DNA of 64,000 bases from Haliotis rufescens. Taxonomy: Eukaryota. The position numbers and the translations under genes are program-made. Where the stretch lies: assembly GCF_023055435.1 (NCBI RefSeq), contig NW_025964013.1, forward strand, positions 5,394,001-5,458,000, in the 5' to 3' direction. This document shows, in pieces, positions 2,962 through 56,567 of the stretch. The notes beneath the pieces were generated by a model. The model was not told the DNA's origin. It saw only the letters and a list, made by a program, of their open reading frames with translations, and searched no databases. Position 1 is the stretch's first letter, and each line of letters begins with the position of its first letter.

Positions 2962-4466
2962 ATGGCGTTCCACTCTCCTCTGCTCATCGCCCTCGCCATC
3001 GGCAACTTGGTGTTCTTCATCATCAATCAGCTATTTGGTGCACTGAACATGGCCGGAGTAAGAGAATGGCTGGGCATTGATATAAGTAAGTACCACATGA
3101 GTAAAAAAATTGTATTGGACAATTAGCAAGATAATATGTTCGTAAAATGTCATCAGTGTAGCTATAATTGACATGACACATTTAGGGTTGTAACTAACCA
3201 TGTAAACATGCCCTTGGTCAGATGGCAACACGACTATAAGGTTTACTTCTCACAAATAGTTAAGACCCATCCGATGTTTTCATATCACTATAGCTAATCT
3301 GTCCTAGTATGATAGATTGACTATAGTAATATATAAGACTTGGGTGGTCCTTAGCTTCGTTTGAGTAGTATAAATATAATCGATGCCGCCCCTCAAACCG
3401 ATTGCGTCTACTGGAGTATCTATTCTGGAGACATTCATACTTTATATAAGAAAATATCCAGCCATAAACCTCTTGCTTCATTCTGTTAAGACTTCCGTTG
3501 CAATCTACAGAACCAAGACATGGAGAACTTGTTTGTAAATTATGTCGAACAATGCATAATTCGAATAGAGCTCGTCTTCTTTGTGGAAGGACATAGATGC
3601 ACGTCATAACTGATTGCCTGTAACTTTCAGATATTTTCGGCCAATCAATGGAAGATGCCTCCGATCAACGGTACCTCGAGATCACGCCCTCTTCAGCCAC
3701 ATTCAGCATCTGGGGCGCCATCTACATATGGCAGGCTATCTGGGCCATCTACGCCCTCGTCAACATCTGCCGCCGTACCCCTGACGGCTACGTCTACAAC
3801 AGCCCCACCCTCCTCAGTGCGACCTTCTTCGGTGTCTCCATCTTCAACTGGATGTGCGTCATCACCTGGACCTTCGTGTGGGGATGGGGTCACGTCTGGA
3901 TCGCCTTTGTTTTCCTGGCCATCGTCTTCATCACCATCTACATCTGCATAGGACTCTCTTACAAGGCACTGGCGCAGCACCACGACGCTCTAGTGAAACA
4001 AGGACGTAAGGTGGACATCTGGTTGATGCGCATGTTGGTGCAGAATGGCCTTGCCTTCTATGGCGCATGGTGCACTATTGCCACTCTCCTCAACCTTGCT
4101 ATGGCTCTGACTTACACCGCCAAACCCCAGTTTGACCAGAGTACCTCATCCACCATCGCTCTTAGCATCCTGTCCGTTGAGCTAACAGTCTTCGCTATCT
4201 CTGATTGGACAATTATGGACAAATACTCACGCTATACTTTTAGTCCCTATATCGTTGTCATGGTTGCACTTTCTGGAAGTATGGTCAAGAACTGGAATCC
4301 AGAGAAGACAAACTCTATTTTCACAGCGGTTTTACTGGGCGTGTCGATATTATGCTTCATCACCAAGATAGTTCTCATGTTTTGGCGACATTGTCGGGAC
4401 TCGAACAGAGACAAAGTTGAACTTCCGACCATCACAGAGAAGCAGAGTACGAGTACTAGACTGTAA
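2962..4466 (+). CDS. Paralogue 1: TspO-like 8-TM membrane protein, 319 aa
   Basis: Exons 2962-3085 (MAFHSPLLIALAIGNLVFFIINQLFGALNMAGVREWLGIDI, donor A|GTAAGT) and 3631-4466 (acceptor TTTCAG|). The phase-1 join is in frame with ORF 3648-4466. Motifs EITPSSATFSIWGAIYIWQ and NGLAFYGAWCTIATLLN. Upstream acceptor at 2946; AATAAA near 4620 and 4690. Confidence 0.9.
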
Positions 4467-5241
4467 CAGGGCGATGCTGGTCCCAGCCTTTTGAACAGTT
4501 TACAGTAGAGAAACGTGTTGATATAAACTTTTGTCACTCTATGTGTGTAATGTTGAGTATATTCAAAGTGCCATGTGATAGTTACACAGTCCCGACACTG
4601 TAACCACAGATATAAAGAAAATAAAACAGATGAATAATGCTTAAGTGTCGTGTATAGAGTTTCCGTATGATACGATCATGTCAGTGTGTAATAAACGCAC
4701 ATATGATTGATGCCGACGAGAGAAGAGGACCAATAGGATGTAACAGAAGGATGCTGGTTCCATGCTTTATTAGATTACAGAAGAGACAGTGTCATTAGAC
4801 AATTCGTATATATATTTATCATTTAACTTAAGCATTTATCCATGACATAAGCTTATGACATAAAAACATGTATGTCATACCCCAATGACATAAGTATGCA
4901 AATTAGATATGCAAATTAGATAACCGGAAGAGGGAGCGGTTTGATTTGAAACTATATATTATAAGTGAAGTTACACCAGAGATATAATCAGATTACACAG
5001 AATCGTTGTTGTTACCGTTATTAAAGTTTCAATTATTCTGCAAAAGTCTGTTCAAGTATTTTGTTTAAAATAATCCGAGGAACTTTTTTTCTCAGCGAAT
5101 TGTTTACTTTGGTCACATGGCTATGGAAAACATGTATCACTACGCACGATCTATACGTAAGATTTCGACAAGTTGCTGATGTTAATGTTTAATGCAATTA
5201 TTCCTTGATTTGGAAGCAAAAATGTGAAAATGATAAATAGA

Positions 5242-5381
5242 ATTCATCACTCGTGTTTTTTAATATGGGAAATATCAACCTCGTCCCGTTAATCGGTATT
5301 TGCCTCGCCAAAGGCTCGGCAAATACCGATTAACTAAGACTCGGTTGATATTTCCCATATTAAAAAACACTCGTGATGAAT
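5242..5381. mobile_element. 140-bp imperfect hairpin with CTCG mismatches, Crypton-like terminal structure
   Basis: The arms are complementary except at three TC/TC mismatches within CTCG and one short internal mismatch. Centre is CTCGCC-AAA-GGCTCG. The Crypton assignment is from recalled similarity only. Confidence 0.5.
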
Positions 5382-5832
5382 CCTCTATATATAACTTGTG
5401 TAGATAAAGATAATAATAATAATGCAAGGTATATCGTCAGACCAGACAATCATTTTTGTACATGATACAGATACACGCACACACCAACACACATGCACGT
5501 TGCACCTCACCGCATCTTCTCGTAGACACGCGACAGCAACCACTTAGTCTTTAGATTCACATAATAACGTATAATTATCAACATATGATAATATGGTGGG
5601 TTGCCTTTTTAAGGGGCACAATCTCACCGATAGATGGGTAGCCTGGTGTTGACTAGTCGGAGCCAAGAGGGAATTGCGTTAAGATACTTATCGTGCCATA
5701 ATAATAGATAGGAATGCCTTTAGTAACACTTGGCCTAAAGTCATAATGGAATTCGTCTTTCTTTTTTGCAAACAGCAGCAGAGCACCTTTTTTTAAACTA
5801 TCTAAAAAAATAAACAATTAATTGAGTTAATA

Positions 5833-6010
5833 CGACTAACGGGATCGGGTGGTCAAGCTCGGTCACTTTGTCGATGCATGTCATCGCATCCCAACTGCGT
5901 AGACCGAAACTTTTGATGTCAATCACTGGATTGTCTGGCCCAGGCTGGCTTATTTACATACCCCATCATATGGCTGGAATATTGCTAAGTGCGGCGTTAA
6001 ACAACAAACA
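5833..6010 (+). mobile_element. Short retroposon family B, 5'-truncated copy
   Basis: Matches 15353-15596 (CGACTAACGGGATCGGGTGGTCA...GCTGGAATATTGCT..GTGCGGCGTTAAACAACAAAC). Confidence 0.85.
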
Positions 6011-6622: not shown

Positions 6623-6625
6623 TGT

Positions 6626-6684
<59 letters not shown>

Positions 6685-6692
6685 GGGGGGGG
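6623..6692. repeat. (TG)n microsatellite followed by poly-G
   Basis: Directly visible. Confidence 0.95.
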
Positions 6693-8469: not shown

Positions 8470-8470
<1 letters not shown>

Positions 8471-10302: not shown

Positions 10303-10390
10303 TTGTATCGATCATCTGGTGTGGTCAGTGCGGACACAATGTAAACGGTCCAATGTCCGTGTGGACAAATACCCAACTCGCCATGCGCCA

Positions 10391-10968
10391 TCCGTATGTA
10401 CAGTCTAGTTGTCATATATCAAGTGGATCTTCCATTGTTTGAATATCCGTGTGTACAGTCTAGTTGTCACATATCAAGTGAATCTTCCATTGTTTGAATA
10501 TCCGTGTGTGCAGTCTAGTTGTCACATATCAAGTGGATCTTCCATTGTTTGAATATCCGTGTGTACAGTCTAGTTGTCACATATCAAGTGGATCTTCCAT
10601 TGTTTGAATATCCGTGTGTACAGTCTAGTTGTCACATATCAAGTGAATCTTCCATTGTTTGAATATCCGTGTGTACAGTCTAGTTGTCACATATCAAGTG
10701 GATCTTCCATTGTTTGAATATCCGTGTGTACAGTCTAGTTGTCATATATCAAGTGAATCTCCCATTGTTCGAATGTCCGTGTGTACAGTCTAGTTGTCAC
10801 ATATCAAGTGAATCTTCCATTGTTTGAATATCCGTGTGTACAGTCTAGTTGTCACATATCAAGTGAATCTTCCATTGTTTGAATATCCGTGTGTACAGTT
10901 TAGTTGTCATATATCGAGTGGATCTTCCATTGTTTGAATGTCCGTGTGTGCAGTCTAGTTGTCACATA
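10391..10968. repeat. 55-bp minisatellite, about 10.5 copies
   Basis: Unit TCCGTGTGTACAGTCTAGTTGTCACATATCAAGTGGATCTTCCATTGTTTGAATA. It ends about 35 bp before the gene 2 acceptor. Confidence 0.95.
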
Positions 10969-11027
10969 TGAAGACCTACTTGAGATGTATTCTTCTGTTC
11001 CAGCCGCCCCCTCCACCACTGACCAGA

Positions 11028-13002
11028 ATGGCTGGACACTCGCCGTTCCTCATTGCCTTGATGGTCGGCAACTTGGTGGCCTTCCTCGCCAACCAGTTCC
11101 TCAGCCTCCTGGGCAACACCAGAGAGTTTCTGGGGATCGACTTAAGTACGTCACCCTCACATGTATCATTTAAACACATGACAAGGTTCTATGTGGTTTC
11201 AAACAAAGAAACTATACGCATCACGTGACGAACGTTTTCATATTTACCAGCTGTAACCCAAGTACGGCATGCAGCTCTTTCTTCTATCTGTTTTTCATTA
11301 GCCCAATAATGTCTAACTTGCAAAATCCAGCGTAATAGTTAATTACCAAATGTGAGGCGAAAGTGTTGGTTTCCTTAGTAAAGTGTTATTCCTATTTATG
11401 GGGAATGTGGAAGCAAGTGTGGTATCGTTGCCTAAACCGCCGCAAAGATTTATGCAGAGTTGGACCCTTCTCAATGCCAAGATAAAACCATTCATCTCTC
11501 GCCCCCATAACTTTGGTTGTGTGCTTTCAAACAACTATACATAAGGCATAAAGTGTCAAACGTGCTCCTGTATAGCAAATTGCAACACTGAACTTTCTTC
11601 ACTACATATCATCAACTTACAGGTAGTCTAAAGACCCGCTATTTATGGTGGGAACCGCTGGTCATGGGGTAGGACGATAGGGTAGTCTGTCGCCACCATA
11701 CCTTTCGTTGTAGGTTTCATGGCATACACTTGTACTACTCCTAGCGTCCTTCCAGCTTTTCCTTATCACTTTTTAAGGACTTGTAACTCATCACTTTGAA
11801 CAGTATTTTAGTTACATCACGACGTGTCAGATTAATGTGGGAGAAAAGCCCGAGTTTACTTACACGCCACGTTTCCCCCTTGTCTGACAACCCTTAAGAC
11901 TGGTATTTTGCTGTCAACCCAAGGAACATTGCCACGGCGCAGGGGTACCTCTTACCGAAGGTAGCCATGACAGCCAGTGTCCGGCACTGATGAATTCACT
12001 TGGATTTGTAATATATACTACACAAATTAGATATTCGGGGGGTGAGGGGAGGGGGCTAGTATGTTTACAGCTAGTCTAAAGCATAATTACTTTTTTTCTC
12101 GACGGGCCGAGACCAAAAAGTTGTCAATATTGAAGCAGAAAACTGACATTGTGCTGTTGCTGTATATTTTAGAGCTCTACCCAAATACGATTGCAAACAT
12201 CTCGGACAAGCTAATGCTCGAGATCACGCCCTCTGGTCCCACCTTTAGCATCTGGGGGGCCATCTACGTGTGGCAGGCTATCTGGACTATCTACGCCCTC
12301 GTCAACATCTGCCGCCGTGCCCCCGACGGCTACGTCTACAACAGCCCCGCCCTGCTCACATCGACCTTCTTCAGCCTCTCCATCCTCAACTGGTTTATCG
12401 TCATTTCTTGGACCTTCCTGTGGTGCTGGGAGCTAGTATGGGCGTCGTTTGTGTTTCTGGCTCTCGCCGCTATTTCCATATACACACTCATTGGTCTTTC
12501 TTGCAAAGCCCTGGCTGAGCACTCCGAGACACTCATCAAACAAGAGCGGAAAAAGGAGATCTGGCTCATCCGGGCATTTGTTCAAAACGGACTGGCGTTT
12601 TACGGAGCCTGGTGCACCATTGCTACTCTCCTGAACGTGGCCACTGCCCTGACCTACGGCGAACACCCCAGATTTGACCAGAGCACGTCCAGCACAATCG
12701 CATTAAGTATCCTGGCCGTGGAGCTTGTGGTATTCTCCATCTCAGACTGGACCGTATTGGACAGGTATACGAGGTATATATTCAGCGAGTACATCGTCGT
12801 GATTATCGCCCTTTCCGGGAGTATCATTAACAACTGGAATCCCGAGAAGCGGAACTCGATCTTCACTGCTGTATTGCTGGGTATGGCGGTGTTTTGTTTA
12901 GTCGTGAAGATGATCGTGATGTTGTGGCGTCACTTCCGGGACACAGGCAGACAGAAAGTGTTCATTCCAACGACAGAGTCAACGCAAGGCGGAACAGCGT
13001 GA
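11028..13002 (+). CDS. Paralogue 2: TspO-like 8-TM membrane protein, 315 aa
   Basis: Exons 11028-11145 (MAGHSPFLIALMVGNLVAFLANQFLSLLGNTREFLGIDL, A|GTACGT) and 12173-13002 (TATTTTAG|), phase 1 and in frame. Motifs EITPSGPTFSIWGAIYVWQ and NGLAFYGAWCTIATLLN. Upstream acceptor at 11003. Confidence 0.9.
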
Positions 13003-17505: not shown

Positions 17506-18859
17506 TACTGAGTCAAATTAAAAACTTCACATTTTAAAAAGTAATCCCTTATATGATATACAATGGACAAATGTATCAGAGAAGGTAATTTTTAATCATT
17601 AATGTCCAAAGAAGGATTTTAATTAACGGTGGTAACCATAATTTGTTCCACGCACCTACGGTATTCGGTAATAACATCAACAGTTTAAATCATTAGTCCC
17701 AAGCACGAGAATCTGATGGCACACAAGTTCAGTAGCGTGTATGGCCACCATGTGCGTTGACAACTGCCACACAACGCCTCCGCATGGACCTTGTGATGCT
17801 TTTGAACACATGATTGGGAAGACACGCCATCGTTGCTGCAAAATGGTGCCAAGATCTTGCAAATTCTGTGGTTGGTTCTGGAGAGTACGCAGACTTCTGC
17901 CAAGAGCATCCCAGACGTGTTCGATGGGATTGAGGTCGGGAGACCTTGACGGCCAGTCCATGACGTTGACTCCCGCATTTTGAAGGAAATTCCTCGTCAA
18001 AATTGCTGTGTGGGGTCTGGCATTGTCGTGTTGGAAGATCGAACCGGGTCCATGTACTGCCATAAAAGGCAGAAGTTCTGGTGCCAGTACCTGGTCGCGG
18101 TAAGCAGCAGCGTTGAGGTTGCCACGGATGACAAGAAGCCTGGAACGTGCATTGCCACAGAAAGCACCCCACACCATTATGCTTCCGCCTTCGTCTGTGT
18201 AATTGAGTCAGAATCGGCCCGCAGTATGGCCGTCGTGCTTGAAGGTGAACAGTTCTCAGACGGTTTCGAACAGTTTGCGCACTCAGTCTACCCCTAAACA
18301 GTTCATTTCTGGTTGATGTAGCCGTCAAAAATCGGTTACGGGGGTGGCGTAAGACAATCTGACGATCCTCTGCATGTGACGTCACACGTGGTCGACCTGG
18401 CCGAGGGCGATCAGCGTTGGTACCCGTTTGCTGTAGACGCGTCTGTAAATCATAAACAGTCCGTCGACAGCCCATCGTCCTTGCGACTTCAGCTACGGAC
18501 GTTCCCGTCTGCAACATGCCGATGGCACGTTCACGTTGCACATTTGAGAGGCGTGGCATGACAAATGGCCGTAAAGACTTTTGTTTTCTTGTGTTTTTCT
18601 TTTTTTGTTAATGACCGCTAACAAGTGTGGCTGAAAACACGTGCGGTATTATGGCCACGTGACCAGTTGCACGTGAAAAAACACCTTTGCCACTATAGTG
18701 CTGTGCACATGATTTTGATCGATTCACCTGCACAAAAACGGGTGTTATCTGAAGACAATACGTGGCCATTACTGTTTAAATACACAATAAGGGTCCACAA
18801 TGATCACTGGTCAAAATGTTAAAATTTTAGGATTGTGAAGTTTTTAATTTGGTTCAGTA
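17506..18859 (-). mobile_element. Tc1 (DD34E) DNA transposon, internally deleted and frameshifted
   Basis: 26-bp TIRs TACTGAGTCAAATTAAAAACTTCACA (2 mismatches) with TA on both flanks. Transposase 18559-17729 has an HTH, GRPR, MVWG and FQHDNARPH-...-SPDLNPIE with 34 residues between D and E. Confidence 0.93.
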
Positions 18860-19016: not shown

Positions 19017-22000
19017 ATGGTTACCGAGACGCGTGGACACTCTCCTGTTCTTATCATGAGCTTGCTGCTCAACTGGACAATGCTTATCCTCAACTTGTTG
19101 ATTTTCTCCCTTGGACGGACGCCACAGCTGGTGGGTGGCTCCTATAGTAAGTAAACACTCCCACCTGTCTGGGTTGACAGCGACAACAAGAGGGAAACAC
19201 TCCCACCTGTCTGGGTTGACAGCACCTATAATAGATAAACACTCCCACCTGTCTGGGTTGACAGCGACAACAAGAGGGAAACACTCCCACCTGTCTGGGT
19301 TAACAGGCCTGTAGTAAGTAAACACTCCCACCTGTCTGGGTTGACAGCACCTATAATAGATAAACACTCCCACCTGTCTGGGTTGACAGCGACAAGAAGA
19401 GGGAAACACTCCCACCTGTCTGGGTTAACAGGCCTGTAGTAAGTAAACACTCCCACCTGTCTCGGTTGACAACGCCAACAATAAGTAAACACTCCCACTT
19501 GTCTGGGTTGACAGAGCCTGTAGTAAGTAAATACTCCCACCTGTGCGGGTTGACAGAGCCTGTAGCAAGTAAACACTCCCACCTGTCTGGATTGACAGCG
19601 CCTGTAGTAAGTAAACTCGCACACCTGTCTGGGTTGACAGCTCCTGTAGTAAGTAAACACTCCCACATGTCTTGGTTGACAGCGCCTGTAGTAAGTAAAC
19701 ACTCCCACCTGTCTCGGTTGACAACGCCAACAATAAGTAAACACTCCCACTTGTCTGGGTTGACAGAGCCTGTAGTAAGTAAAAACTCCCACCTGTGCGG
19801 GTTGACAGAGCCTGTAGCAAGTAAACACTCCCACCTGTCTGGGTTGACAGCGCCTGTAGTAAGTAAACTCTCACACCTGTCTGGGTTGACAGCTCCTGTA
19901 GTAAGTAAACACTCCCACATGTCATGGTTGACAGCGCCTGTAGTAAGTAAACACTCCCACCTGACTTGGTTGACAGAGCCTGTAGTATGTAAACACTCCC
20001 ACCTGTCTGGGTTTACAGCACCTGTAGTAAGTAAACACTCCCACCTGTCTAGGTTGACAGCACCTATAATAGATAAACACTCCCACCTGTCTGGGTTGAC
20101 AGAGCCTGTAGTAAGTAAACACTCCCACCTGTCTGGGTTGACAGAGCCTGTAGTAAGTAAACACTCCCACCTGTCTTGGTTGACAACGCCTGCAGTAAGT
20201 AAACACTCCCACCTGTCTCGGTTGACAGAGCCTGTTGTAAGTAAACACTCCCACCTGACTTGGTTGACAGAGCCTGTAGTATGTAAACACTCCCACCTGT
20301 CTGGGTTTACAGCACCTGTAGTAAGTAAACACTCCCACCTGTCTGGGTTGACAGAGCCTGTAGTAAGTAAATACTCCCACATGTCTTGGTTAACATCGCC
20401 TGTAGTTAATAAACACTCCAACCTGTCTGGGTTGACAGAGCCTGTAGTTAATAAACACTCCCACCATTTCAGGTATACATCGCAAGTAGCGCCTTGTAAG
20501 CCCATCTGCATGGGTGGGTGATGCTTGTAAGATGTGAACACACATGGGAATCCCACCTTTATGGGTGTTAAATGCTTTTCTAGATGAACAACCACTGTGA
20601 ATCCCATATTGCCTTCAGCAATGTTCAGCCTTCAGCAATGTTCACAGTCCTATCGCTTCATACAGTGTACCCATGTGGCGAATCGAACCCGGGACTTCGG
20701 TAAGAAGATCCGGGATAGAATAGATCTTCAACAACCCATGCTTGTCGTAAGAGGCGGCTAACGGGTATCCTGTGGTCAGGCTCGCTGATTCGGTTGATGC
20801 ATGTCATTGTTTCCCAAATGCTTGGATCGATGCTCATGATGTCAATCACTTGATTGTCTATTCCAGACTCGATTATTTACAAACCACCATCATATAGCTG
20901 GAATATTACAAACAACACAATTCGGTATGATAAAGAATGCTTCAACCACTAGGTTAGGTTTTCATTTGTAGAGCCAAAATGTACCTCCTGTTTATTCACA
21001 CATGACGATCTAATCTTGTGTGATGTTCCATAACAGAACTACTGATCTACGACATCAAAGACATATCTGACAAGTATGCTGTAGAGATTACTCCGGCCAG
21101 TCCGATGCTCGCTATCTGGTGGGTCATCTTTGTGTGGCAGGGACTGTGGATGGTGTTCGCCCTCATCAACATCTGCAGGTACGTCATCCCACGCGCTCCC
21201 AGAAATACACGCCCCATGACAGGATCCGCTGATAGGGGGTTCGAATCCAAATCTGTCCCAATTCAAAATTTGACAGTACCATACCCGTACTCGGGGGTTT
21301 CACCAAGGTGGTAAATGTCTGAGACCTTCACCATATTGGACCGTTTTCCTACATTAAGATTAAGTAATATTACTTAAATAATACAGTGATATTACTTAAT
21401 ATTACTTAAATAATGCTTGACAGATTTAAACTCACTCGCTCAGCAATACAGCGTAAATGTGCTACAAGCTGCCCTCTGCAATATACACCGTGTTAATGGA
21501 GGCACTATTGTTACGAGGCGATTTCCAAATTGAAACAGGAAAAGCCAGATTCGGTTCGTACAGAACTAAATTGTGAAATCAGTAAAGGATCACACAAGAT
21601 CAATGAGAATCAGCACGTGATATTAAAACACAGGTTTAGGGTGACAATACAAAGGCAATACAATGGGTCCATTAAGTATAAGGGGCGGTCGGGTAGCCTA
21701 GTGGTTAAAGCGTTCGCTCGTCACGCCGAAGACCCGGGTTCGATTCCCGACATGGGTACAATGTGTGAAGCCCATTTCTGGTGTCCCCCGCCGTGATATT
21801 GCTGGAATATTGCTAATGGCGGCGTAAAACCATACTCACTCACTCACTCACATTAAGTATAATTACGAATGTTCCTGGGTTTTTTCTGTGGAATGTCTTG
21901 AACCTGACTCTTGAGTCCCAAATAGTGTTGGAAGCTTGCAGGAATTCGAGGTTTTCTTATGAGTATCAAATCTGCACTTGAAAAGTACTTGACTCAAGTC

Positions 22001-23177: not shown

Positions 23178-23499
23178 ACGTCAACAAGCTGTGGTACATT
23201 TTCATAACAATTGTCAATACGTGTTCATTTTACCTGTTTTTGTACGCTTTTGTAATAAAGCACATGATTGATTTTCCACCACTGTCCTTATGTCCTCCTG
23301 TAGTATCAAGATCTTAAATCGTTTTTGACTGAGCTCGTTGTTGTGGTAGATAAAAGTTAACTCTTCGTTTACTTGCCTTCAATCGTTGGACCAGATATAT
23401 GATATTATGTATTGAGAGAGAGTCTATACAATTCTGTCAAGAGCTGAACCTATCTAAAAGTATAGCTCCTCCTTGTAACATGACAATCTGTACCATAAC

Positions 23500-24215
23500 A
23501 TATTACATAGAGGGTGTCGATACTTTTCAACAGCTGAACGTGTTATATTGAGGATATCGACCCTTGTCAACAGCTTAACGTATTATATAGAGCGTGTCGT
23601 TCCGTGTCAATAGCTGAACATGTTATATAGGGGGTGTTTGTCGTTGACAACGACTGGACACGTTATATTGAGGGTGTCCATCCTTGTCAACAGCTGAACA
23701 TGTTATGTAGGGGGTGTCTGTCGTTGACGACGGCTGAGCAAGTTATATAGAGGGTCGATCCTTGTCAACAGCTGAACACGTTATATGGAGGGTGTCAGTC
23801 GATGTCAACAGCTGAATATGTTATATACAGGGTGTCAGTCAATGTCAACAGCTGAACACGTTATATAGAAGGTGTCAGTCGATGTCAACAGCTGAACACG
23901 TTATATAGAGGGTGTCAGTCGATGTCAACAGCTGAACACGTTATATAGAGGGTGTCAGTCGATGTCAACAGCTGAACACGTTATATAGAGGGTGTCGGTC
24001 GATGTCAACAACTGAACATTATATAGAGGGTGTCGATCCTTGTCAACAGCTGAACATGTTATAGAGGGGGTGTCTGTCATTGTCAACAGCTGAAGACGTT
24101 ATATAGAGGGTGTCAATCGATGGCAACAGCTGAACACGATATATAGAGGGTGTCAGTAGATATCAACAGCTGAACATTTTATATAGAGGGTGTCAGTTGT
24201 CAACAGCTGAACGAG
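23500..24215. repeat. 40-bp minisatellite, about 18 copies
   Basis: Unit TGTCAACAGCTGAACACGTTATATAGAGGGTGTCAGTCGA; the central copies are the most homogeneous. Confidence 0.93.
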
Positions 24216-36548: not shown

Positions 36549-38449
36549 ATGATGAAGTCGGTCCCGCCAATGTTGTTGCAGGCCCTCAATGTAGGGGCTC
36601 TCCTCGCCTTCATACTCACCGCCGCCTTCAACGGACTGGCGTCAGATACTAGCATAGGTAGGTCAGTGACGACTGTGGGCGCATGGTATGTCTTTCCTAT
36701 GTGCTGTAGACAAGCATGAGTCTTTGGTGGTGATAATTTTGGACTATTGGGATTAGGGGAAATTTCCATGAGAAATATATGCATTTGGTAAATTTGTTTG
36801 AGTGTGTTTATCTTTTGATTTAACGTGAAATGTGTTGTATAATAACGCTGATGAGGAGAGTAGGCTATTACTTCTGACAAGAACATTATAAAGATATTCT
36901 ACGTCCGCTTCAGTGACCATTGAAGAAATAATGTGGAAAGTTATAATTTCTTGAAATGTTGAAATGTCAAATAGCAGTTGAGCAAAATTTGTATTTCTGT
37001 GTTTACACCAATAAATGTGGTAGTATGTCCATGTTTATTTTACTATGTAAGTGGTATGTTTAATGTTAGACCTGCATCACTACGGGCTTCCCCCACCCCC
37101 ACCACCCCCACCACCCCCACCACTACATTGCTGAAACGTCATGATATGACTGGAAAACTGTTCAAAGCGCCGTTAAAATCAACTCACCTTTACAGGGCGA
37201 ACATATATCACGTATTATGAAAATATAGTGATGTGCGACTCTTTAAGATTTGTCTCTAATTTTTGTCTTTAATCTTTCACTCTCTATCGCTCCTAAGTGG
37301 GTCTTATATTGTGCTGATGCCACAGACGGGTGATGTGGCTGCGTGTTGAAGCCTCGCATCATGGATTTCTGTTAATTTCGTTGCCATCAGATATTAGTCA
37401 TCCGACTGAGACGTAAAAAGCGTCCAATGATCATCTCATCTGATGTGGCTATTTGAAGTAGTTAATCTTTCGGATAAAGCGTTAAAGTAACAAGATCAGT
37501 ATTTGTTTGAATTGTGCTCAGTGCACTCCTGTGCGAACCCGTTATGGGTTGTTATTTTGAATATAAGACTCATTAATCAAGCTGTGGATGTTTTTACTTT
37601 GTGTTTCTTGCAGGCGTCTTCCTAAATTCCACAGGGGACATCTCGGACGTATTCTACATCGAGATCACTCCCGCCGGCTGGACCTTCAGCATATGGGGCC
37701 TCATCTATGCCTGGCAGGCTGTCTGGATTGTCTACTCATTGGTCCGCATCTGCAGGAAGAGTCCAGAAGGACCTCTCTACCTCAACCCCGTTCTTCTGCC
37801 CCCCGCCTTCTTCGGAATGTACATCCTGAACATGTTCCTCAACATCAGCTGGCTCCTGCTGTTTGACCGCCAACTCATCGAGCTGGCTTTCAGCTTCCTG
37901 TTCGCCATTGCCTTCACCCTGTACATCTGCCTGTGGATCTCCTACACCTCCCTGGATAACAACATGGAGGTCCTGGCTAAACTCAATCTTAAGATTGAGG
38001 ACACTTTAGTGCGTGCATTCGTCCACAACGGGCTTGGAATCTATGCGGCTTGGACCACCATTGCTTCCTTCCTCAACATGGGCTTTGTGATTGCCTACAG
38101 AGCTAACCCCGCCATCGACCAGAGCACCGCGTCCTCCATCTCCCTCGGCTTCATCACCGCCGCCTTGTTCCTCTTCGTCATCACCGACCTCTTCCTATTC
38201 GACAGATACAGTCGGTATACCATCACGCCTTATGGCGTCATCGTGTGGGCTCTCTCAGGCAGCCTGGCCAAGAACTTTGACGCTGCTCGCGGGAACTCTA
38301 TCTTCACCATTGTACTCATAGTGATAGGCGTGTTAGCTCTCATTGCCAAGATAGTCTTCGTCATCATCAGAAGCAAGTCCAAACCTGTGTTTACCTCATC
38401 CACGAACATTACCATGCCGGAGAAGCAGGACACTGTCGGCATGGCCTGA
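36549..38449 (+). CDS. Paralogue 4: TspO-like 8-TM membrane protein, 314 aa (closest to family consensus)
   Basis: Exons 36549-36657 (MMKSVPPMLLQALNVGALLAFILTAAFNGLASDTSI, G|GTAGGT) and 37614-38449 (TTCTTGCAG|), phase 1. Motifs EITPAGWTFSIWGLIYAWQ, LNISW and NGLGIYAAWTTIASFLN. Upstream acceptor at 36530. Confidence 0.92.
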
Positions 38450-40393: not shown

Positions 40394-42948
40394 TCAATCT
40401 GAGTCACTGTTGCAGGTTTCTGAAGCCGTGACAGTGCATTCGGAATCGGTGTCGCTGTTGTCCGAATCGCTACCGCCGCTGTCCGAGTCTACCCTGATGA
40501 TCACTGGCTTGATTGTGGCATGGTCCAATCCACTATGATCCCAATATTGTCTCTCTATTTCATTCTCAACTTTCTCAACACACTTTTGCCACGTTTCCTG
40601 CGTGATGGTGTCTATTGATTGTTGAACCAGTTTCTGTACATCCCACAGTTTGAATGTTGTATTTTGCCTGGCAACATCCGATTTAATGGTACCCCAAATT
40701 AGTTCTATTGGGTTTAAATCGCAATGATAGGGCGGCAATCGCAAAACTGAATGGCCATGTTCTTTAAGATACTCGTCATCTTTAAAGACAGGTGAGGTTT
40801 TATTAGACTTTATAATATCATACAGAACAGGTTTCGTTGCCTTTTGTGGATACGGTATTGCTTTGTGTGTCAACCATTCTATCATATCATGGAGATGGAG
40901 ATGAAAAGGCCAAGGCACAAGTTGTAGTATTCTCAGTTGGAATATTGATGGATTGTACAAACACGCGAGCTCTTCATTTAGTGATTTTAAACAGTTCTGC
41001 AGTAGATGCGACATTATTAGTTTCTGTGAGTCGTTTGTTAAGCAGGAAGATGACTTGATCTATTGTCCGTTTTCAATCATTTAACTTTTGTCGACCTAAA
41101 CATAAACAACGTGGGCGTTACAGTAGTGGTGTAACCGTATTGGTGAAAGATAATTTAATCAAGAACAATCTTATTCGTCGAATATGTCATTCATTTATCG
41201 ACTGTGTTGTGTTGCACTTTCAAAGAAGTTATTTTGGATTACAAAAAAGATTCAGTTTCAATATGTGTTTATATCTCGCCTGAAAACTCCCCTGTTAATA
41301 ATGAGGCTAACATTGATCCAATAAGTCGTCTTGAGGGATATATTGAGACAATCAAAAATATCTATAACAATCATAACCCACTACTTGCTGGAGATTTCAA
41401 TGCAAGGATGCGTACATTTCTGGATTATATCCCAGCTGATGACCTCAACTTCATCCATGAGAACAGTGATGACTATCCAACTGCTGGGTTCGATATTCCC
41501 CGTAAAACAAAGGATGACACTCGACACAACAGTTACGGTGTCAAACGAGCAAAATTATGTTGCACACGTGATGTCCATGTACTAAACGGGCGGTTATTTG
41601 ATGATATGGATTAAAACTTGACTTGTATCACACATTAGAATGATTTTATTCCAGTTTGGATTTGGTTTTGTTTGGCTAAACCAAGACATTGGTAATATTC
41701 AACATTTCATGACATATTTTAAACGAAGATTTTACGACTGCCTCAATCAATATTGGCACTTTTCCCTGTCATCATCTACGAAATGCAATTACTACTCACA
41801 GTTCAATTCATTACTAAATGTGGAATCATATATTACTTGTGTTATGTCTTCTTACCAACGTAGACTTATAGCCATGTTCCGGTGTAATAATTTCAGACTT
41901 GCTGTTGAACTGGGGCGTCACAACAACATCCCATATAATGAACGTGTATGCACTTTCTGTTTTTCAAAGGGACATAACCATGCTGAAGATGAATTCCATG
42001 TTCTCATGATTTATGACCAGTATTCTAGAGCAAGAAGAAACTCTTTTCCCAAGCGTCTCGTTACCCCTCCCTCTATTGAGAATTTTATAAGACTTTTGTC
42101 AGCTGAAAACGAACAAATTATAAAAAAGCTTAGGTAAATTTCTCTCCCAAGTCATGAATATCGAAAGGAAACGGTAAATCATTATTAAATCTATTCAGCA
42201 TGCAAATATATATACAGTATATTTCCATTGTATTATGGGCCGGTGGCCTAAAGTATCGAATAAATTTATCTGTCTGTCTGTCTGTCATATCGCCCTTCCT
42301 ACTGTTAGACGTTGGGGCTTTTGTGTTAGGTACCTGAACGCCATGATATGGAGCATTGTCCATGACAACCAGACTCTTGGGGAGCAATACCGGTAGCAGT
42401 TGAGTTTTAACACATTCTAGGAATACCGCTCCGTTCATTTCGGTATGATAGTCTCGGTTGTCCTTGGATTTTGCCTTGAAGACTAGCGAACAGCCTGGTA
42501 GGAATCCCCGACTCTTGCAGCCAGCATGGAGCACAATAAGCCGCTCACCCTTGCCAAGTGGCAATTTCCTGCACAGAAATCAGAGGAGGAGCTAGGGAAC
42601 CATTGTGTTCCTGTGGTATGGGAAGCGTTTACCCACGTTTCGTCCAAGTATACGGGCTCATAACCCTCGTAACGTTTTTCTCGTATTGTGCGTAAGAAAT
42701 GGTTCCTTAGGCGAACAATCAGACCTCTCGCATAATGCATGTCTATTGTCGGAGCCTACTTTTTTGTAACGGAAACCAAATTGGTGTAGCAATTTCCATA
42801 ACTGATATTTTGAAATGGTCAAAGAATGATTTGTCTCCATATATGTTTTTAGAGTACGGAGAGATTCATAGATATTTTGTTTATACAGAGTCTTAATGGC
42901 GTTTCTAACCATCTCTTGTTGAAATGAATCGACTTTAAAACATCGCAT
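40394..42948 (-). pseudogene. IS630/Tc1-superfamily transposase, DD83E (Sailor-like), split by a LINE
   Basis: PVYLDETWVN, GKGERLIVLHAG, DYHTEMNG, VMDNAPYH...KGDM | IEWL...LRLPPYHCDLNPIELIW. There are 83 residues between the second D and E after removing the insertion. Frameshifts are present; TIRs were not identified. Confidence 0.85.
40889..42284 (+). mobile_element. RTE-X-like LINE lacking its RT domain
   Basis: 7-bp TSD TCATATC at 40882-40888 and 42285-42291. APE motifs LSWNIDGL, VYISPENS and AGDFNAR. Near 41630 it jumps to the C-terminus GFGFVWLNQ..FRCNNFRLAVELGR..RVCTFC..EDEFH. AATAAA and a (TCTG)n tail follow. Confidence 0.85.
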
Positions 42949-43321: not shown

Positions 43322-45365
43322 TGACTGTTTACAAAGATGTCCTATTGACCACCTGACTGTCTCCAAAGATGTCCTACTGAACATCCGACTGTCTACAAAG
43401 ATGTCCTACTTACCACCCGACTGTCTACAAAGATGTCCTACTGACCACCCGACTGTCTACAAAGATGTCCTACTGACCACCCGACTGTCTCCAAAGATGT
43501 CCTACTGAACATCCGACTGTCTACAAAGATGTCCTACTGACCACCCGACTGTCTACAAAGATGTCCTACTGTCCACCTGGTTGTCAACAAAGATGTCCTA
43601 CTGACCACTCGACTGTCTACAAAGATATCCTACCGACCACCTGACTGTCTACAATGATGTCTTACTGACCACCTGACTGTCTACAAAGATGTCCTACTGA
43701 CCACCTGGCTGTCTACAAAGATGACCTATTGACCATCTGACTGTCTACAAAGATGTCCTACTGACCACCTGGCTGTCTACAAAGATGTCCTGCTGTCCAA
43801 ATCACTGTCTACAAATATGTCCTGCTGTCCAACTCACTGTCTACAAAGATGACCTACTGACCACCTGACTGTCTACAAAGATATCCTACCGACAACCTGG
43901 CTGTCTACAAAGATATCCTGCTGACCACCTGACTGTCTACAAAGATATACTGCTGACCACCTGACTGTCTACAAAGATGTCCTACTGACCACCTGACTGT
44001 CTACAAAGATGTCCTGCTGTCCACCTGACTGTCTACAAAGATCAAAGATATCCTACTGTCCACCTGGTTGTCCACAAAGATATCCCACTGACCACCTGGC
44101 TGTCTACAAAGATATCCTTCTGACCACCTGGCTGTCTACAAAGATATCCTTCTGACCACCTGACCGTCTACAAAGATATCCCACTGTCCACCTGGTTGTC
44201 CACAAAGATATCCTACTGACCACATATGGCTGTCTACAAAGATATCCTTCTGACCACCTGGCTGTCTACAAAGGTATCCTTCTGACCACCTGACCGTCTA
44301 CAAAGATGTCCTGCTGTCCACCTGACCGTCTACAAAGATATCCTACTGACCACATGGCTGTCTACAAAGATATCCTTCTGTCCACCTGGCTGTCTACAAA
44401 GATATCCTACTGTCCACCTGGCTGTCTACAAAGATATCCTACTGTCCACCTGACCGTCTACAAAGATATCCTACTGACCACATGGCTGTCTACAAAGATA
44501 TCCTTCTGTCCACCTGGCTGTCTACAAAGATATCCTACTGTCCACCTGGTTGTCCACATAGATATCCCACTGTCCACCTGGTTGTCCACAAAGATATCCT
44601 ACTGACCACATGGCTGTCTACAAAGATATCCTTCTGACCACCTGGCTGTCTACAAAGGTATCCTTCTGACTACCTGACCGTCTACAAAGATGTCCTGCTG
44701 TCCACCTGACCGTCTACAAAGATATCCTACTGACCACATGGCTGTCTACAAAGATATCCTTCTGTCCACCTGGCTGTCTACAAAGATATCCTACTGTCCA
44801 CCTGGCTATCTACAAAGATATCCTACTGTCCACCTGACCGTCTACAAAGATATCCTACTGACCACATGGCTGTCTACAAAGATATCCTTCTGTCCACCTG
44901 ACTGTCTACAAATATGTCCTTCTGACCACCTGGCTGTCTACAAAGATATCCTACTGTCCACCTGGTTGTCCACAAAGATATCCCACTGTCCACCTGGTTG
45001 TCCACAAAGATATCCTACTGACCACATGGCTGTCTACAAAGGTATCCTTCTGACTACCTGACCGTCTACAAAGATGTCCTGCTGTCCACCTGACCGTCTA
45101 CAAAGATATCCTACTGACCACATGGCTGTCTACAAAGATATCCTTCTGTCCACCTGGCTGTCTACAAAGATATCCTACAGACCACCTGACTGTCTACAAA
45201 GATGTCTGACTGGCTACAAAGATGTCCGCCTGTCCACCTGACTGTCTACAAAGACGTCCTACTGACCACCTGGCTGTCTACAAAGATGTCCTGCTGTCCA
45301 AGTCACTGTCTACAAATATGTCCTGCTGTCCAACTCACTGTCTACGCAGATGTCCTGCTGTCCAC
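43322..45365. repeat. 32-bp minisatellite, about 64 copies, with 384-bp higher-order repeat
   Basis: Unit GACTGTCTACAAAGATGTCCTACTGACCACCT. An identical variant block starts at 44306, 44690 and 45074. Confidence 0.95.
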
Positions 45366-50175: not shown

Positions 50176-50889
50176 CTGAAAAAGTTAAAAATACCAATAA
50201 ATTTAAGACCACGCGAGCAGGCGTTGATGATGTCAACTGTTTGGTGTGACACCACGTCCTGCTACACCTGTACCGTGTCTTAAAGTGTGACCTTACATCA
50301 GTGTTAACTGGTTTCAATGAGTCGATGTCTAATTCTACGGTTCGTTAAGTTTAGATTTGATGATAATGCGTTTGGATGACGTTCAAGTCCCGATGGCGCC
50401 GATGACTGAACGAGGCAGAGACGAGGATCACCCAACTCGTATCTTCTCAATAGTTGTCGCTGATCCCCAGGCGCTTGTGTGTACTAGAACGAATTCTGTT
50501 CATTTTCAGTACCATTTACACATCTGTAATATTCAATAAAAAGAAACAGGTGCTTACCTTTTGTGTTATAATCAAGCATTGAAGGTACCGGAGAAAGCCG
50601 GACTCAGTCAGTTGGTAAACGTGACGTGCCTCTCAAACGTGCTATGCGGGGTTACTGTATATGTGTAATTCGTATCCCTCGTTAAGCATCGCCTCGGTAC
50701 ATTACAAACATTCATGTCACAATCAACTCGAAATCCACAGTAAATCACAACGTACAGTGTTTTATGACGAAAGCACTATTATAGTAGTTGTTTATAAAAC
50801 CATAAATACTCATGTGCGTCGTAGTGAAAATTACATTGTCTAAATCTGTTGGATTTTGTTAAATGGAAATAATAACGTCAATATTTTGT

Positions 50890-51375
50890 AGTACAGATGA
50901 TATTGGCGTCAACGGTTTCCAGTACAGATAATGTTGACTGTCAATGTTTTCTTGTACAGATACTATGGACCGTTAATGTTTTCTTGTACAGATAATATAG
51001 ACCGTTAATGATATCTAGTACAGATAATATAGACCGTTAATGTTATCTAGTACAGATAATATAGACCGTTAATGTTATCTAGTACAGATAATAAAGACCG
51101 TCAGTCTTTTCTTTTACAGATAATATGGACCGTCAGTGGTATCTTACAGAGATACTTTGGACCGTCAATGTTTTCTCGTACAGATAATATGGACAATCCA
51201 TGTTTTCTAGTACATATGATATAGACCGTCAATGTTTTCTCGTACAGATAATATGGACAATCCATGTTTTCTAGTACATATAATATAGACCGTCAATGTT
51301 TCCAGTACAGATACTATGGACCGTCAGTGTGTTCTTGTACAGATAGTATGGACTGTCAATGTTTTATTGTACAGA
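50890..51375. repeat. 32-bp minisatellite, about 15 diverged copies
   Basis: Unit GTACAGATAATATAGACCGTTAATGTTATCTA. Confidence 0.9.
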
Positions 51376-52121: not shown

Positions 52122-53288
52122 TACCTCTATAAGCTACCTGTAGATGTAACAACATCTCTGTTAATTAACTGTATCTGTTACAACATCTCTATAAACTATC
52201 TGTAGATGTAACAACATCTCTGTTAACTAACTGTATATGTTACACAATCTCTAAAGACTACCTGTATATGTTACAACATCTCTATAAACTACCTGTAGAT
52301 GTAACAACATCTTTGTTAACTAACTGTATATGTTACAACATCTCTATAAACTACCTGTAGATATAACAACATCTTTGTTAACTAACTGTATATGTTACAA
52401 CATCTCTATAAACTACCTGTAGATGTAACAACATCTTTGTTAACTAACTGTATATGTTACAACATCTCTATAAACTACCTGTAGATGTAACAACATCTTT
52501 GTTAACTAATTGCATTATGTTACAAAATCGCTATTAACTACCTGTATATGTAACAACATCTCTATAAACTACAAGTGTATGTACAATCTCTATAAACTAC
52601 GTGTATGTGTTACAACATCTCTATAACCTCCCTGTATATGTTAAAACATCTCTATAACCTCCCTGTATATGTTACAACATCACTATAACCTCCTTGTATA
52701 TGTTACAACATATCTATAACCTCTCTGTATATGTTAAAACATCTCTTTAACCTCCCTATATATGTTACAACATCTCTATAACCTCCCTGTATATGTTACA
52801 ACATCTCTATAACCTCTCTGTATATGTTAAAACATCTCTTTAACCTCCCTATATATGTTACAACATCTCTATAACCTCCCTGTATATGTTACAACATCTC
52901 TATAACCTCCCTGTATATGTTACAACATCTCTATAACCTCCCTGTATATGTTACAACATCTCTATAACCTCCCTGTATATGTTACAACATCTCTATAACC
53001 TCCCTATATATGTTACAACATCTCTATAACCTCCCTGTATATGTTACAACATCTCTATAACCTCCTTGTATATGTTACAACATCTCTATAACCTCCCTGT
53101 ATATGTTAAAACATCTCTTTAACCTCCCTATATATGTTACAACATCTCTATAACCTCCCTGTATATGTTACAACATCTCTTTAACCTCCTTGTATATGTT
53201 ACAACATCTCTATAACCTCCCTGTATATGTTAAAACATCTCTTTAACCTCCCTATATATGTTACAACATCTCTATAAACTACCTGCAG
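52122..53288. repeat. 31-bp minisatellite (62-bp dimer on the left, monomer on the right)
   Basis: Unit TGTATATGTTACAACATCTCTATAACCTCCC. A 62-bp period is seen at 52321/52383/52445. Confidence 0.95.
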
Positions 53289-53647
53289 GTGTTACATAGT
53301 TATAACCACACTATGTATTGCGTTGACATATGCCGATTTATGGACATGTTTATTTTTGAAATGATGTTTTCAATGTGGTTTGTGTGGGGTCATCTTTAGC
53401 CGAGCTGATCATTACTCACGTATGTTTATTGCCGTTTCTCATAATCTGTTCTACGGTGACCTTGCCCTTCTTTTCAAGGCGTTGCCAGCAATGTCCAAGC
53501 GTTCGAGAAACATTAACGTCATAGATGATGAAACCGATTTTCCTTTATGAACCGCCAGACAGTCCTATGACAGTAAATAAGAGCGACCAAACCATACAAT
53601 CCACACCAAAATAGGAACTTTTCCGACTATTTGATAAGAATGAGTTT

Positions 53648-53715
53648 ACAGACCGCCGTCATATAGCTAAAATATTGCTGAGCGCGGCGTTAAAAAACCA
53701 ACCAACCAACAACCA
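53648..53715 (+). mobile_element. Family B 3' tail fragment
   Basis: TTACAGACCGCCGTCATATAGCT..AATATTGCTGAG.GCGGCGTTAAA followed by (AACC)n. Confidence 0.75.
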
Positions 53716-54211
53716 ACTAAGTGGAGGATGTATCATCACCCCGTTTAATTAAATTACAGTTACAGAATTCAAACCGTCAACGTCAGATACAATCCGACTC
53801 GGATATCCTATTTTTAACTCTCTGCCTGCAATGTCTATTGATGTTTAGAATAATCTGTCACATGTCATTACGTGGTTATATTGATTTCCCATTTCGAAAA
53901 TGACAAGGACAGACAGACTCTTGCTCAAAATATTTTTTGGTCGGGGTTATAGCGTACAATGCCCCAATATAGCTTTCAAAAGGATACGCTCAAATATATT
54001 CGAAAACATGTTGTCATCACTGTTTGATAGTGATTCATAAACACATGTTCATGATATAGTCGGAATCGTACCATCGACTTTGCCTTTGACTGAGATTTCT
54101 ATGAATATGGACAAGGGGCTTTGTCACTTATATTTACGTACAGAGTTGTTGTTTTCAGTATCACACAGTGCTGACGGCGTCGCCACTGTAGACTCGAATA
54201 CGTGGCTTCAA

Positions 54212-55230
54212 ACCAACATGTTTCTTGTAAGTTCCTCAGTCCGCACACTTTACCAACATGTTTCTTGTAAGTTCCTCAGTCCGCCCACTTTACCAACATG
54301 TTTCTTGTAAGTTCCTCAGTCCGCCCACTTTACCAACATGTTTCTTGTAAGTTCCTCAGTCCGCCCACTGTACCAACATGTTTCTTGTAAGTTCCTCAAT
54401 CCGCCCACTTTACCAACATGTTTCTTGTAAGCTACTCAGCCCACTCACTTTACCTTGTAAGTTCCTCAGTCCGCACACTTTACCAACATGTTTCTTGTAA
54501 GTTCCTCAGTCCGCCCACTTTACCAACATGTTTCTTGTAAGTTCCTCAGTCCGCCCACTTTACCAACATGTTTCTTGTAAGTTCCTCAGTCCGCCCACTG
54601 TACCAACATGTTTCTTGTAAGTTCCTCAATCCGCCCACTTTACCAACATGTTTCTTGCAAGCTACTCAGCCCACTCACTTTACCAACATGTTTCTTGTAA
54701 GCTACTCAGTCCACTCACTTTGCCAACATGTTCCTTGTACATTCCCCAGCACACTCACTTTACCAACACGTTTCTTGTACATTCCCCAGTCCACTCACTT
54801 TACCAACATGTTTCTTGTACATTCCCCAGTCCACCCACTTTACCAACATGTACCTCGTACATTCCCCAGCCCACTCACTTTACTAACATGTTCCTTGTAC
54901 ATTCACCAGCCCACTCACTTTACCAACATGTTCCTTGTACATTCCCCAGTCCACTCACTTTGCCAACATGTTCCTTGTACATTCCACAGTCCACTAACTT
55001 TACCAACATGTTCCTTGTGCATTCCCCAGTCCACCCACTTTACCAACATGTATCTGAAACAGGCCCCAGCCCACTCACTTTGCCAACATGTTCCTTGTAC
55101 ATTCCCAAGCCCACTCACTTTACCAACACGTTTCTTGTAAGTTCCTTAGTCCACTCACTTTGCCAACATGTTTCTTGTACATCCTCAAGTCCACTCACTT
55201 TGCCAACATGTTACCACTTCACTTTACCAA
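54212..55230. repeat. 40-bp minisatellite, about 25 copies, upstream of gene 6
   Basis: Unit ACCAACATGTTTCTTGTAAGTTCCTCAGTCCGCCCACTTT grades into ACCAACATGTTCCTTGTACATTCCCCAGTCCACTCACTTT. Confidence 0.95.
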
Positions 55231-55522
55231 CGGCATCTAATTGAAGTCTCTCTTTTTGGAAGTTAACGTGATTGTGCCTCTGTGTGACATGCAATACCTA
55301 TCATGATCGAGGTAACTATCGTCAGCTATTGTTTTAATCCAACGCACTGGTGAGCTTTGTTGTACTGAAATATTGTTATTAAATCAGTGATGTATCTTTT
55401 TGGCGTGCTTTGGATATTGAAACGTGTTGTCGTCGCTATATGACTGAATTTAACTCACTCGCTCACTTAAATGTTTGTTCCTCTACGTGTTCTCTTTTGT
55501 TACTTAGTGAGCCTCAGTTACA

Positions 55523-56567
55523 ATGAAGTGGTCGGGCACCTCCCTGATTCTTCTCAACGTCTTGACCCTGCTGGTGTTTGTGGTGACAGTCATACTCACC
55601 TTCTTTGCCGAGCTTGGAGGATCAGGTAATTGCACTCATTCCACCCATTGTACCATCTCTTGGTACTTGTAAGAAATTATTATACCGTATACTCAAGGAT
55701 CCCATGCATGCTGTACATTTTTGTGTAAAAAATTGAATTCTTTGATATCAAATTTCAGACATTTTCCTGGATACAACAAACAATGTGTCCAACCTTAATA
55801 ACAACGTGTTCAGGAAAGCCCGATGGTCTATCTACGTCTTTGCCTTCATATTTGCTCTTCAAATTCTCTGGCTCATCTTTTCGCTGACCCTGATCTGTAG
55901 GAAGGGCCCCGAGGGGCCTCTCTACCTCCACCCCGTCCTCTTCACCCCCGCCTTCTTCTGGGTGCACATCCTGGGTGATCTACTCTACATCGGCTGGCTG
56001 TTTCTCCTCGATAGACAGGCTCTGGAACTAGCCTTCGTCTTCCTCCTAGGTTCGGAGCTCTGTTACTACGCGTGTCTCGTCCTCAGCTACAGAACCAGGT
56101 TCGAACACAAGCTCGAGCTACAGAAGCAGGGACGGCATGTTGACAACGTGCTGTTCATACTATTTGTTGAGAATGCCATTGGTGCCTTTGCGATCTGGAT
56201 TCTTGGTAATGCACTGTTCACCCTAGCTATGGTGATGACCTCCCTGTCCAGTACGCCACTGGGCCCAGTTGCAGGCGGATGTGTATCATTAGGGTTTCTT
56301 ATTGTCCTATTGACAACGCTTGACATTGTTGACATTTTTGTGGTCAGGAAGTTTAGTGAGTACACCTTTAGTACTTACATTGCAAAATTAATTATTATTG
56401 TTTCAGTAGTGGATGCAAACATTGGACGGACAAACCTAAACACAATCTTAACGTTAATTCCCCTTGGGATGGAGATCAGCTTTTTTCTTGTTAAGATTAT
56501 CATTGTAGCTATGGACAAAATTAAACATTCTGTAGTGCCCAACACTGAGACTGAACTGTTAATGTAG
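55523..56567 (+). CDS. Paralogue 6: divergent 8-TM membrane protein, 303 aa
   Basis: Exons 55523-55625 (MKWSGTSLILLNVLTLLVFVVTVILTFFAELGGS, G|GTAATT) and 55759-56567 (TTTCAG|); 133-bp phase-1 intron. Retains ICRKGPEGPLYLHPVL and LLDRQALELAF, shared with paralogue 4. Upstream acceptor at 55507; AATAAA near 56867. Confidence 0.88.

Follow-up and report, generated by a model that had tools for sequence, protein, structure and literature searches.

Six abalone genes from a probable ancient eight-helix branch of the TspO/MBR superfamily, expanded in Haliotis, with a putative TSPO-like ligand pocket

Results

Six related genes were analyzed in a stretch of 64,000 nucleotides of the Haliotis rufescens genome (contig C235:5394001-5458000; no N, GC content 41%), which is called the window below. 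They are named p1 to p6 along the contig, two neighbors from the same cluster outside the window are named p0 and p7, and the RefSeq label of the abalone genes is "uncharacterized protein". An original prediction had described the six genes as a tandem array encoding TspO-like proteins with eight transmembrane (TM) helices, and as a candidate system for the binding of small ligands. We conclude that they probably belong to an ancient, uncharacterized eight-helix branch of the TspO/MBR superfamily that has been expanded in Haliotis and that appears to have a TSPO-like ligand pocket. In the predicted models, helices 1-5 make up a bundle of the TSPO type, with the short loop-1 helix and the pocket residues of bacterial TSPO, and helices 6-8 are an addition of three helices that bacterial and Asgard-archaeal members already have.

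Homology to TspO

The Pfam profile PF03073 (TspO_MBR) was matched by 18 of 50 animal relatives of the abalone proteins (best E 2.9e-7) and by 13 of 49 prokaryotic relatives (best E 4.3e-9), and no second Pfam family recurred among these scanned proteins. Several relatives exceeded the gathering score of 24 bits, with matches that spanned profile positions 9-144 of 145, including P0018 (30.2 bits), P0082 (30.8 bits), and proteins of Fictibacillus (34 bits) and Terribacillus (38 bits). For the two latter, the long gene was the sole TspO_MBR match in the genome. Furthermore, the animal family profile was aligned to canonical TspO, represented by an alignment of 23 Rhodobacteraceae genes, and hhalign returned an E value of 5.2e-6 and a probability of 86% over 122 columns, in the register of the signature motifs. 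This is exactly the register in which the original prediction had equated motifs in TM1-5 with those of TspO. The motifs that it had read in p4 were found at the following positions of the window:

37667-37708, plus strand: p4 loop-1/TM2 signature TPAGWTFSIWGLIY, which aligns to TspO W-PP-W-F---W--LY
37838-37852, plus strand: p4 TM3 signature LNISW, read in the sequence
38042-38077, plus strand: p4 TM5 signature YAAWTTIASFLN, read in the sequence

RsTSPO numbering was obtained by aligning the canonical profile to the solved RsTSPO chains, and the mutant chains A138F and A139T confirmed it. The family residues and their RsTSPO equivalents are:

Loop 1/TM2: W59 corresponds to W44, and F61 to F46
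Loop 1/TM2: W64 corresponds to W50, and Y68 to Y54
TM3: N113 corresponds to N84, and W116 to W87
TM5: Y180 corresponds to Y132, and W183 to W135
TM5: A187 corresponds to A139, and N191 to N143

The animal family shows no variation at W64, W183, and A187. In RsTSPO, W50, W135, and residue 139 are linked by water and are located beside the bound heme, and loop 1 lies directly above the pocket; A139T of RsTSPO has been equated with human A147T (PMC10077581). The likeness extends to the animal mitochondrial TSPO (mouse 2MGY), a member of the same superfamily, in that the equivalent of human A147 (A187) and the Trp of TM5 are conserved. Every signature residue of loop 1/TM2, TM3, and TM5 has been retained in p4, whereas p0-p3 and p5 differ at some of these residues and p6 has lost most of them. 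The abalone proteins are true remote homologues of TspO/MBR, but they are not part of the family of 18-kDa five-helix proteins as narrowly defined.

Several other candidates were tried and rejected. Among PDB sequences, the animal profile had no match at all, and a single match of the prokaryotic profile, a viral coat protein, was judged to be due to chance. DUF1774, which was returned by the ESM Atlas (0.87), had no support in the Pfam scans, and the other ESM Atlas matches were unnamed clusters of the same family. An origin of TM6-8 by internal duplication of the core was rejected, as the alignment of the two halves with hhalign gave an E value of 0.25. The idea had come from comparisons with single exons of the abalone TSPO gene, which are too short to be informative; in one of these, hhalign aligned TM5 of TSPO to TM7 of the family (E 0.08).

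Predicted structures

The AlphaFold2 model of p4 (predicted local distance difference test, pLDDT, 92.3; predicted template modeling score, pTM, 0.89) contains eight long helices and the short loop-1 helix, in agreement with the eight hydrophobic segments that had been claimed. It was compared with 48,161 solved chains, and the top match was BcTSPO (4ryi_A; Z 11.1, root-mean-square deviation 4.1 Å, 18% identity), with residues 7-198 of the predicted model covering 146 of the 151 residues of that chain. The Z score for RsTSPO was 8.1. The model of an Asgard-archaeal member (pLDDT 94.6) has the same eight helices, and BcTSPO (Z 13.6) and RsTSPO (Z 13.2) occupied ranks 1 and 2, followed by the next match at 10.7. 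The TSPO matches cover about 97% of the TSPO chain at 14-18% identity, versus 3-10% for the other structural matches. For helices 6-8 of the archaeal model, generic three-helix bundles were the sole structural matches. The Pfam matches of the relatives, the hhalign result, and the structural ranks (1 for abalone, 1-2 for the archaeon) agree with the proposal of a TspO core followed by three extra helices.

Distribution of the eight-helix family

Animal members of the family were found in gastropods, bivalves, an annelid, a nemertean, a brachiopod, echinoderms, hemichordates, sharks, and teleosts, and ESM Atlas clusters added rotifers; among the matches listed, none came from tetrapods, insects, or nematodes. 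Prokaryotic relatives were encoded at 224 of the scanned loci, mostly by open reading frames (ORFs) of 250-270 amino acids (aa), in Bacteroidota, Chloroflexota, Myxococcota, Rhodobacteraceae, Terribacillus, Asgard archaea, and Bathyarchaeia. These ORFs carry the motif (V/T)PAGxxFSIWGxIY. The longer family in bacteria and fish that the original prediction had mentioned does exist. The unnamed prokaryotic proteins share the eight-helix model and the signature motif with the animal proteins, and some of them are classed as TspO_MBR by Pfam. Unlike the abalone genes, theirs are single-copy and intronless; identity is 24-31%. The animal and prokaryotic profiles aligned with each other over TM1-TM7 (hhalign 99.9%, E 1e-31). 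In an exhaustive profile search, 4,095 cluster representatives were matched at E <= 1e-3, of which 464 reached E <= 1e-30.

Because the animal and prokaryotic profiles align and the Asgard-archaeal member folds alike, the eight-helix design is ancient and older than abalone. In p4, the TPAG motif of the family, homology to its profile over TM1-TM7, and eight helices in the model are all present, and p6 is a divergent member. One UniRef entry of the family is named "Tryptophan-rich sensory protein", and a literature search found no paper on the eight-helix family. The family is thus an old variant of the TspO fold, catalogued but unstudied, and the abalone-specific feature is the copy number. 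From the claim of a lineage-specific expansion, the part concerning copy number is retained, as Haliotis-only clades were found (see below), whereas the eight-helix architecture is not lineage-specific, as it is present in bacteria and archaea.

With bacterial TspO/TSPO (PF03073; BcTSPO 4RYI, RsTSPO 4UC1, 8E7W) the family shares the five-helix bundle with the short loop-1 helix as well as residues in loop 1/TM2 (P, W, F, W, Y), TM3 (N, W), and TM5 (Y, W, A, L, N). In contrast, bacterial TspO has a length of about 150-160 aa and five helices (about 18 kDa), whereas the long family has 250-340 aa, eight helices, and invariant motifs of its own, such as (V/T)PAGxxFSIWGxIY and a conserved R237-Y238 pair. 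The function of TspO has been tested experimentally, while the long family is known here from sequences and models. A CRAC-type cholesterol motif was looked for after TM5 of p4 and was absent, unlike in animal TSPO.

Five genomes contained a long gene without a canonical TspO gene and one Rhodobacteraceae genome contained both, so that there was no clear pattern. In the latter genome, the canonical TspO scored 134 bits and the long-type frame of 255 aa 22.7 bits (C16:354127-354537, C1:272083-272448). The canonical TSPO gene of abalone is separate from the genes described here (C246:3634561-3636479, 100 bits to PF03073); between profile positions ~102 and ~91-145 it is interrupted by an intron of about 1.5 kb.

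The gene cluster of H. rufescens

A tblastn search of the window with the large exon of p4 as query matched six loci (E 3e-40 to 2e-85), and the short first exons were located by mapping the annotated proteins of Haliotis and by searching for the N-termini with high sensitivity. The six genes are:

2962-3085 and 3631-4466, plus strand: p1, 319 aa, phase-1 intron GTAAGT...TTTCAG, RefSeq LOC124128686 (P0150)
11028-11145 and 12173-13002, plus strand: p2, 315 aa, intact frame
19017-19146, 21037-21178, and 22490-23177, plus strand: p3, 319 aa, start codon tentative
36549-36657 and 37614-38449, plus strand: p4, 314 aa, 100% identical to RefSeq LOC124128680 (P0001)
47731-47629 and 46966-46056, minus strand: p5, 337 aa, RefSeq P0156 (LOC124126493/LOC124126489)
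55523-55625 and 55759-56567, plus strand: p6, 303 aa, intact frame

In each of the six genes, the coding sequence begins with ATG, is divisible by three, and is free of internal stop codons, the introns have canonical GT-AG borders, and the product has 303-337 aa. The frames were intact at six of the six loci, as had been predicted, and positions 2962 and 56567 turned out to be the p1 ATG and the p6 stop codon. The models of p1, p4, and p5 agree with RefSeq P0150, P0001, and P0156, the sole difference being the codon split at the junction. Full-length analyses were based on these three proteins, and p2, p3, and p6 were handled by exon. Intron 1 has phase 1, an equivalent codon position, and a polypyrimidine-AG acceptor in all six genes. 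The exon architecture said to be common to the genes is therefore shared with respect to intron 1, but p3 has an extra phase-2 intron at 21179-22489 with canonical sites (GTACGT...TTTCAG). Likewise, the paralogues are clustered, but the order is not strictly head-to-tail, as p5 lies on the opposite strand. In pairwise comparisons, the six are 26-65% identical, and therefore, judged by their sequences, they are old paralogues and not recent copies.

A 42-bp minisatellite with 31.6 copies (19141-20465) extends from the last bases of p3 exon 1 into intron 1. Its unit includes a GTAAGT donor, so that intron 1 of p3 opens with a run of repeated donor-like sites.

The number of six genes is a lower bound, as the cluster runs past the window. 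The p0 gene, 8 kb upstream of the window, shares 96.7% identity with p1, and p7 is found 14 kb downstream. When the whole assembly was searched with a profile, 23 matches were obtained, which represent at least 14 distinct loci in the assembly and at least 8 in this cluster. Six copies are dispersed: a pair of a p5-like and a p4-like gene at C235:4.166 Mb, two genes on contig C334, and two on contig C90. A large part of the window belongs to a long repeat:

C235:5405546-5484363 and 5484363-5563243: two head-to-tail copies of a 78.9-kb unit, window positions 11546-64000 being part of the first copy

The two copies have an identity of 99.0-100%, and p2-p7 are thereby doubled. Because the repeat junction lies inside intron 1 of p2, the second p2 copy is without a recognizable exon 1. 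The repeat may have arisen by a very recent duplication, or it may be an artefact of the assembly.

The dispersed pair on C235 (4163001-4172000) is 1.2 Mb away and consists of the p5-like gene LOC124123732 (96% identical) and, on the opposite strand, the p4-like gene LOC125371773 (88% identical, 241 aa), which is missing its N-terminal part. It looks like an inverted duplicate of p4-p5 with one decaying member.

The relationships were analyzed with quick maximum-likelihood trees rooted with prokaryotes. All abalone copies fell into two Haliotis-only clades, one with p4, p5, p6, p7, and the two C90 genes (SH-like approximate likelihood ratio test, SH-aLRT, 96) and one with p0-p3 and the two C334 genes (SH-aLRT 95). 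A single Haliotis clade is compatible with the data and was not rejected in the approximately unbiased (AU) test (p = 0.39). The H. asinina orthologues of p1, p4, and p5 are nested inside the Haliotis clades. With p5 as query, orthologues were found in H. cracherodii (97%) and H. asinina (79%), followed by the Haliotis p4 type (51%), and identity was at most 44% outside Haliotis. The other species contributed at least 1-3 sequences each among the matches listed, often as lineage-specific pairs; the lists used for this comparison were clustered at 90% identity and are not a census. As the H. asinina orthologues are nested within the Haliotis clades, the trees indicate an expansion specific to the Haliotis (or vetigastropod) lineage that predates the split of H. 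rufescens and H. asinina.

Divergence of the copies

The copies differ in the extent to which they have kept the positions conserved in the family. The most canonical copy is p4, with 42 of 43 positions, followed by p0, p1, and p2 (37/43 each) and p5 (36/43). The p0-p2 copies have lost W59 in loop 1 and N113, D121, and R122 in TM3. The loop-1 signature of p1 reads TPSSATF, and the loop-1/TM2 signature of p3 is degenerate (TPASPMLAIWWVIF). In p6 the signature is largely lost (17/43): TPAG is gone, W64 is replaced by F, and A187 by N. Its sister p7, outside the window, has kept 18 of 41 positions.

Among p0-p5, identity in loop 1 is 45%, compared with 56% in the family at large, and no other region varies more among these paralogues than in the family; TM2 is equally conserved in both (61% vs 62%). 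From the claim of a diversified loop-1/TM2 pocket, the loop-1 part therefore receives weak support, and the TM2 part does not hold. The p1 and p2 proteins are 65% identical, with a ratio of nonsynonymous to synonymous substitutions (dN/dS) of 0.16. The dN/dS ratios were 0.16-0.48 for most pairs, among them p0/p1 with 0.35 and p5/C235a with 0.48, and reached 0.71 for p4/C235b, the latter being the truncated copy of 241 aa.

Locus surroundings

Minisatellites with unrelated units are found upstream of the start codons of p1 (1887-2881, 38 bp x 26), p2 (10390-10973, 55 bp x 10.6), and p6 (54212-55212, 40 bp x 25). They end about 55-310 bp before the start codons and are likely to lie within promoter or 5'-untranslated regions. 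Spacer minisatellites with units of 31-40 bp are located at 23497-24212, 43322-45354, 50876-51375, and 52125-53296, and one of them, a 32-bp x 58 array, lies about 700 bp past the stop codon of p5. Transposon-type ORFs are present between the paralogues at 17732-18559 (minus strand), 29796-30449 (plus), 31780-32301 (minus), and 40397-41014 (minus), and they contain Tc1/mariner-like helix-turn-helix domains, a DDE_3 endonuclease fragment, and a zf-RVT reverse-transcriptase zinc finger. One of these ORFs matches the PML C-terminal domain (E 3e-10).

Discussion

By analogy with TSPO, the cavity that helices 1-5 of the eight-helix proteins form below loop 1 would accommodate a planar hydrophobic ligand, which the proteins may also modify. 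The first candidate is a tetrapyrrole (porphyrin, heme, or bilin), because the shared residues sit beside the heme in RsTSPO; a sterol or another lipid would also be possible. After duplication, the copies would have diverged under purifying selection. In this process p4 would have kept the ancestral pocket, the changes in loop 1 and TM3 of p0-p3 and p5 could mean an altered specificity, and the loss of the pocket signature in p6 and p7 could indicate that these two copies have acquired a new function or have none. Porphyrin binding is a conserved property of the TSPO family, and the physiological role of TSPO is still disputed. Vertebrate TSPO2 is another lineage-specific duplicate within the TspO family and has altered ligand-binding properties; it is a single duplicate of a five-helix protein, in contrast to the multi-gene expansion of an eight-helix protein in abalone.

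Several results weigh against this interpretation. The abalone large-exon peptides and P0001 did not match PF03073, even at E <= 1 or 0.1, and a scan of the abalone exons with NCBIfam gave no TspO match either. The animal and prokaryotic family profiles retrieved no TSPO chain by sequence in the PDB. The alignment of the prokaryotic profile with canonical TspO was weak (hhalign E 0.019), though in the same register. Foldseek gave TSPO the top probability (0.96) but an E value of about 1, and Z scores of about 13 can be reached by unrelated helical bundles. The dN/dS ratios of the older pairs (0.16-0.37) are rough values, as dS is saturated. Moreover, 127 prokaryotic neighbor genes included no conserved partner and no tetrapyrrole context (ABC 8, MFS 7, SerRS 6), and the conserved polar residues N113, D121, R122, R170, N175, R237, Y238, and N257 are not accounted for by a simple binding pocket.

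The two latter observations lead to the strongest alternative, namely that the proteins have a TSPO-like fold and a different job, as a housekeeping membrane enzyme, transporter, or lipid handler, and that the array arose by ordinary birth-and-death duplication without ligand diversification. A different biochemical activity would be compatible with the many conserved polar residues; S47 and N264 also belong to the invariant or near-invariant polar or charged residues in or near the helices, together with those named above. Conservation of the three C-terminal helices extends from archaea to fish, and the family is present in non-phototrophic anaerobes and Asgard archaea. Spacers full of transposon remnants and minisatellites would be expected of a readily duplicating locus. 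However, the residues shared with TSPO are just those around the porphyrin/heme site, and most copies are under purifying selection and yet unlike in loop 1, the lid of that site. We regard this alternative as rather unlikely, though it deserves to be taken seriously.

In the opposite direction, the eight-helix family might be a second class of tetrapyrrole-handling membrane proteins of animals and prokaryotes, in which the Haliotis variants of the loop-1 lid would form a repertoire that binds or detoxifies porphyrins and bilins from the diet, the pigments found in the shells of vetigastropods. We consider this a bold extension of the binding-pocket interpretation that is unlikely to be correct.

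An adaptation of algal grazers, in which the proteins bind dietary chlorophyll catabolites (pheophorbides) or handle tetrapyrrole pigments of shell and tissue, would go well with the conserved TSPO-type pocket residues and with the Haliotis-specific expansion. Tetrapyrrole shell pigments are commonest in vetigastropods, haliotids among them, and there is a report of protoporphyrin in the foot of Haliotis (PMC4930200). In addition, PMC5723588 refers to work on how diet affects shell colour in H. rufescens. However, the other sampled grazers Lottia, Littorina, and Aplysia were represented by 1-2 copies among the matches listed, and PMC5723588, a transcriptome study of porphyrin-based shell colour, makes no mention of TSPO-like genes. 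A chlorophyll-specific role is unlikely, because members of the family are found in anaerobes, archaea, carnivores, and fish, and filter feeders and sharks have them as well. On balance, such an adaptation is very doubtful.

That the resemblance to TspO is convergent or due to composition (Trp-rich helices) in an unrelated family, as the missing direct Pfam match of the abalone proteins, the solved TSPO chains unmatched by sequence, and the weak Foldseek E values might suggest, is highly improbable in view of the single register obtained from independent lines, the Pfam scores above the cut-off in animals and prokaryotes, the hhalign E value of 5.2e-6, and the first ranks of TSPO among the solved chains.

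The interpretation as an ancient branch with a TSPO-like pocket has consequences at different levels. For abalone biology, it would supply candidate genes for the handling of tetrapyrrole pigments, a link that is circumstantial. In addition, abalone would offer natural variants for comparative binding studies, with the canonical p4, p0-p3 and p5 with an altered loop 1, and p6 and p7 with a lost signature. For the superfamily, a second ancient branch that combines the TSPO pocket residues with three additional helices would be an independent system for asking what the pocket is for.

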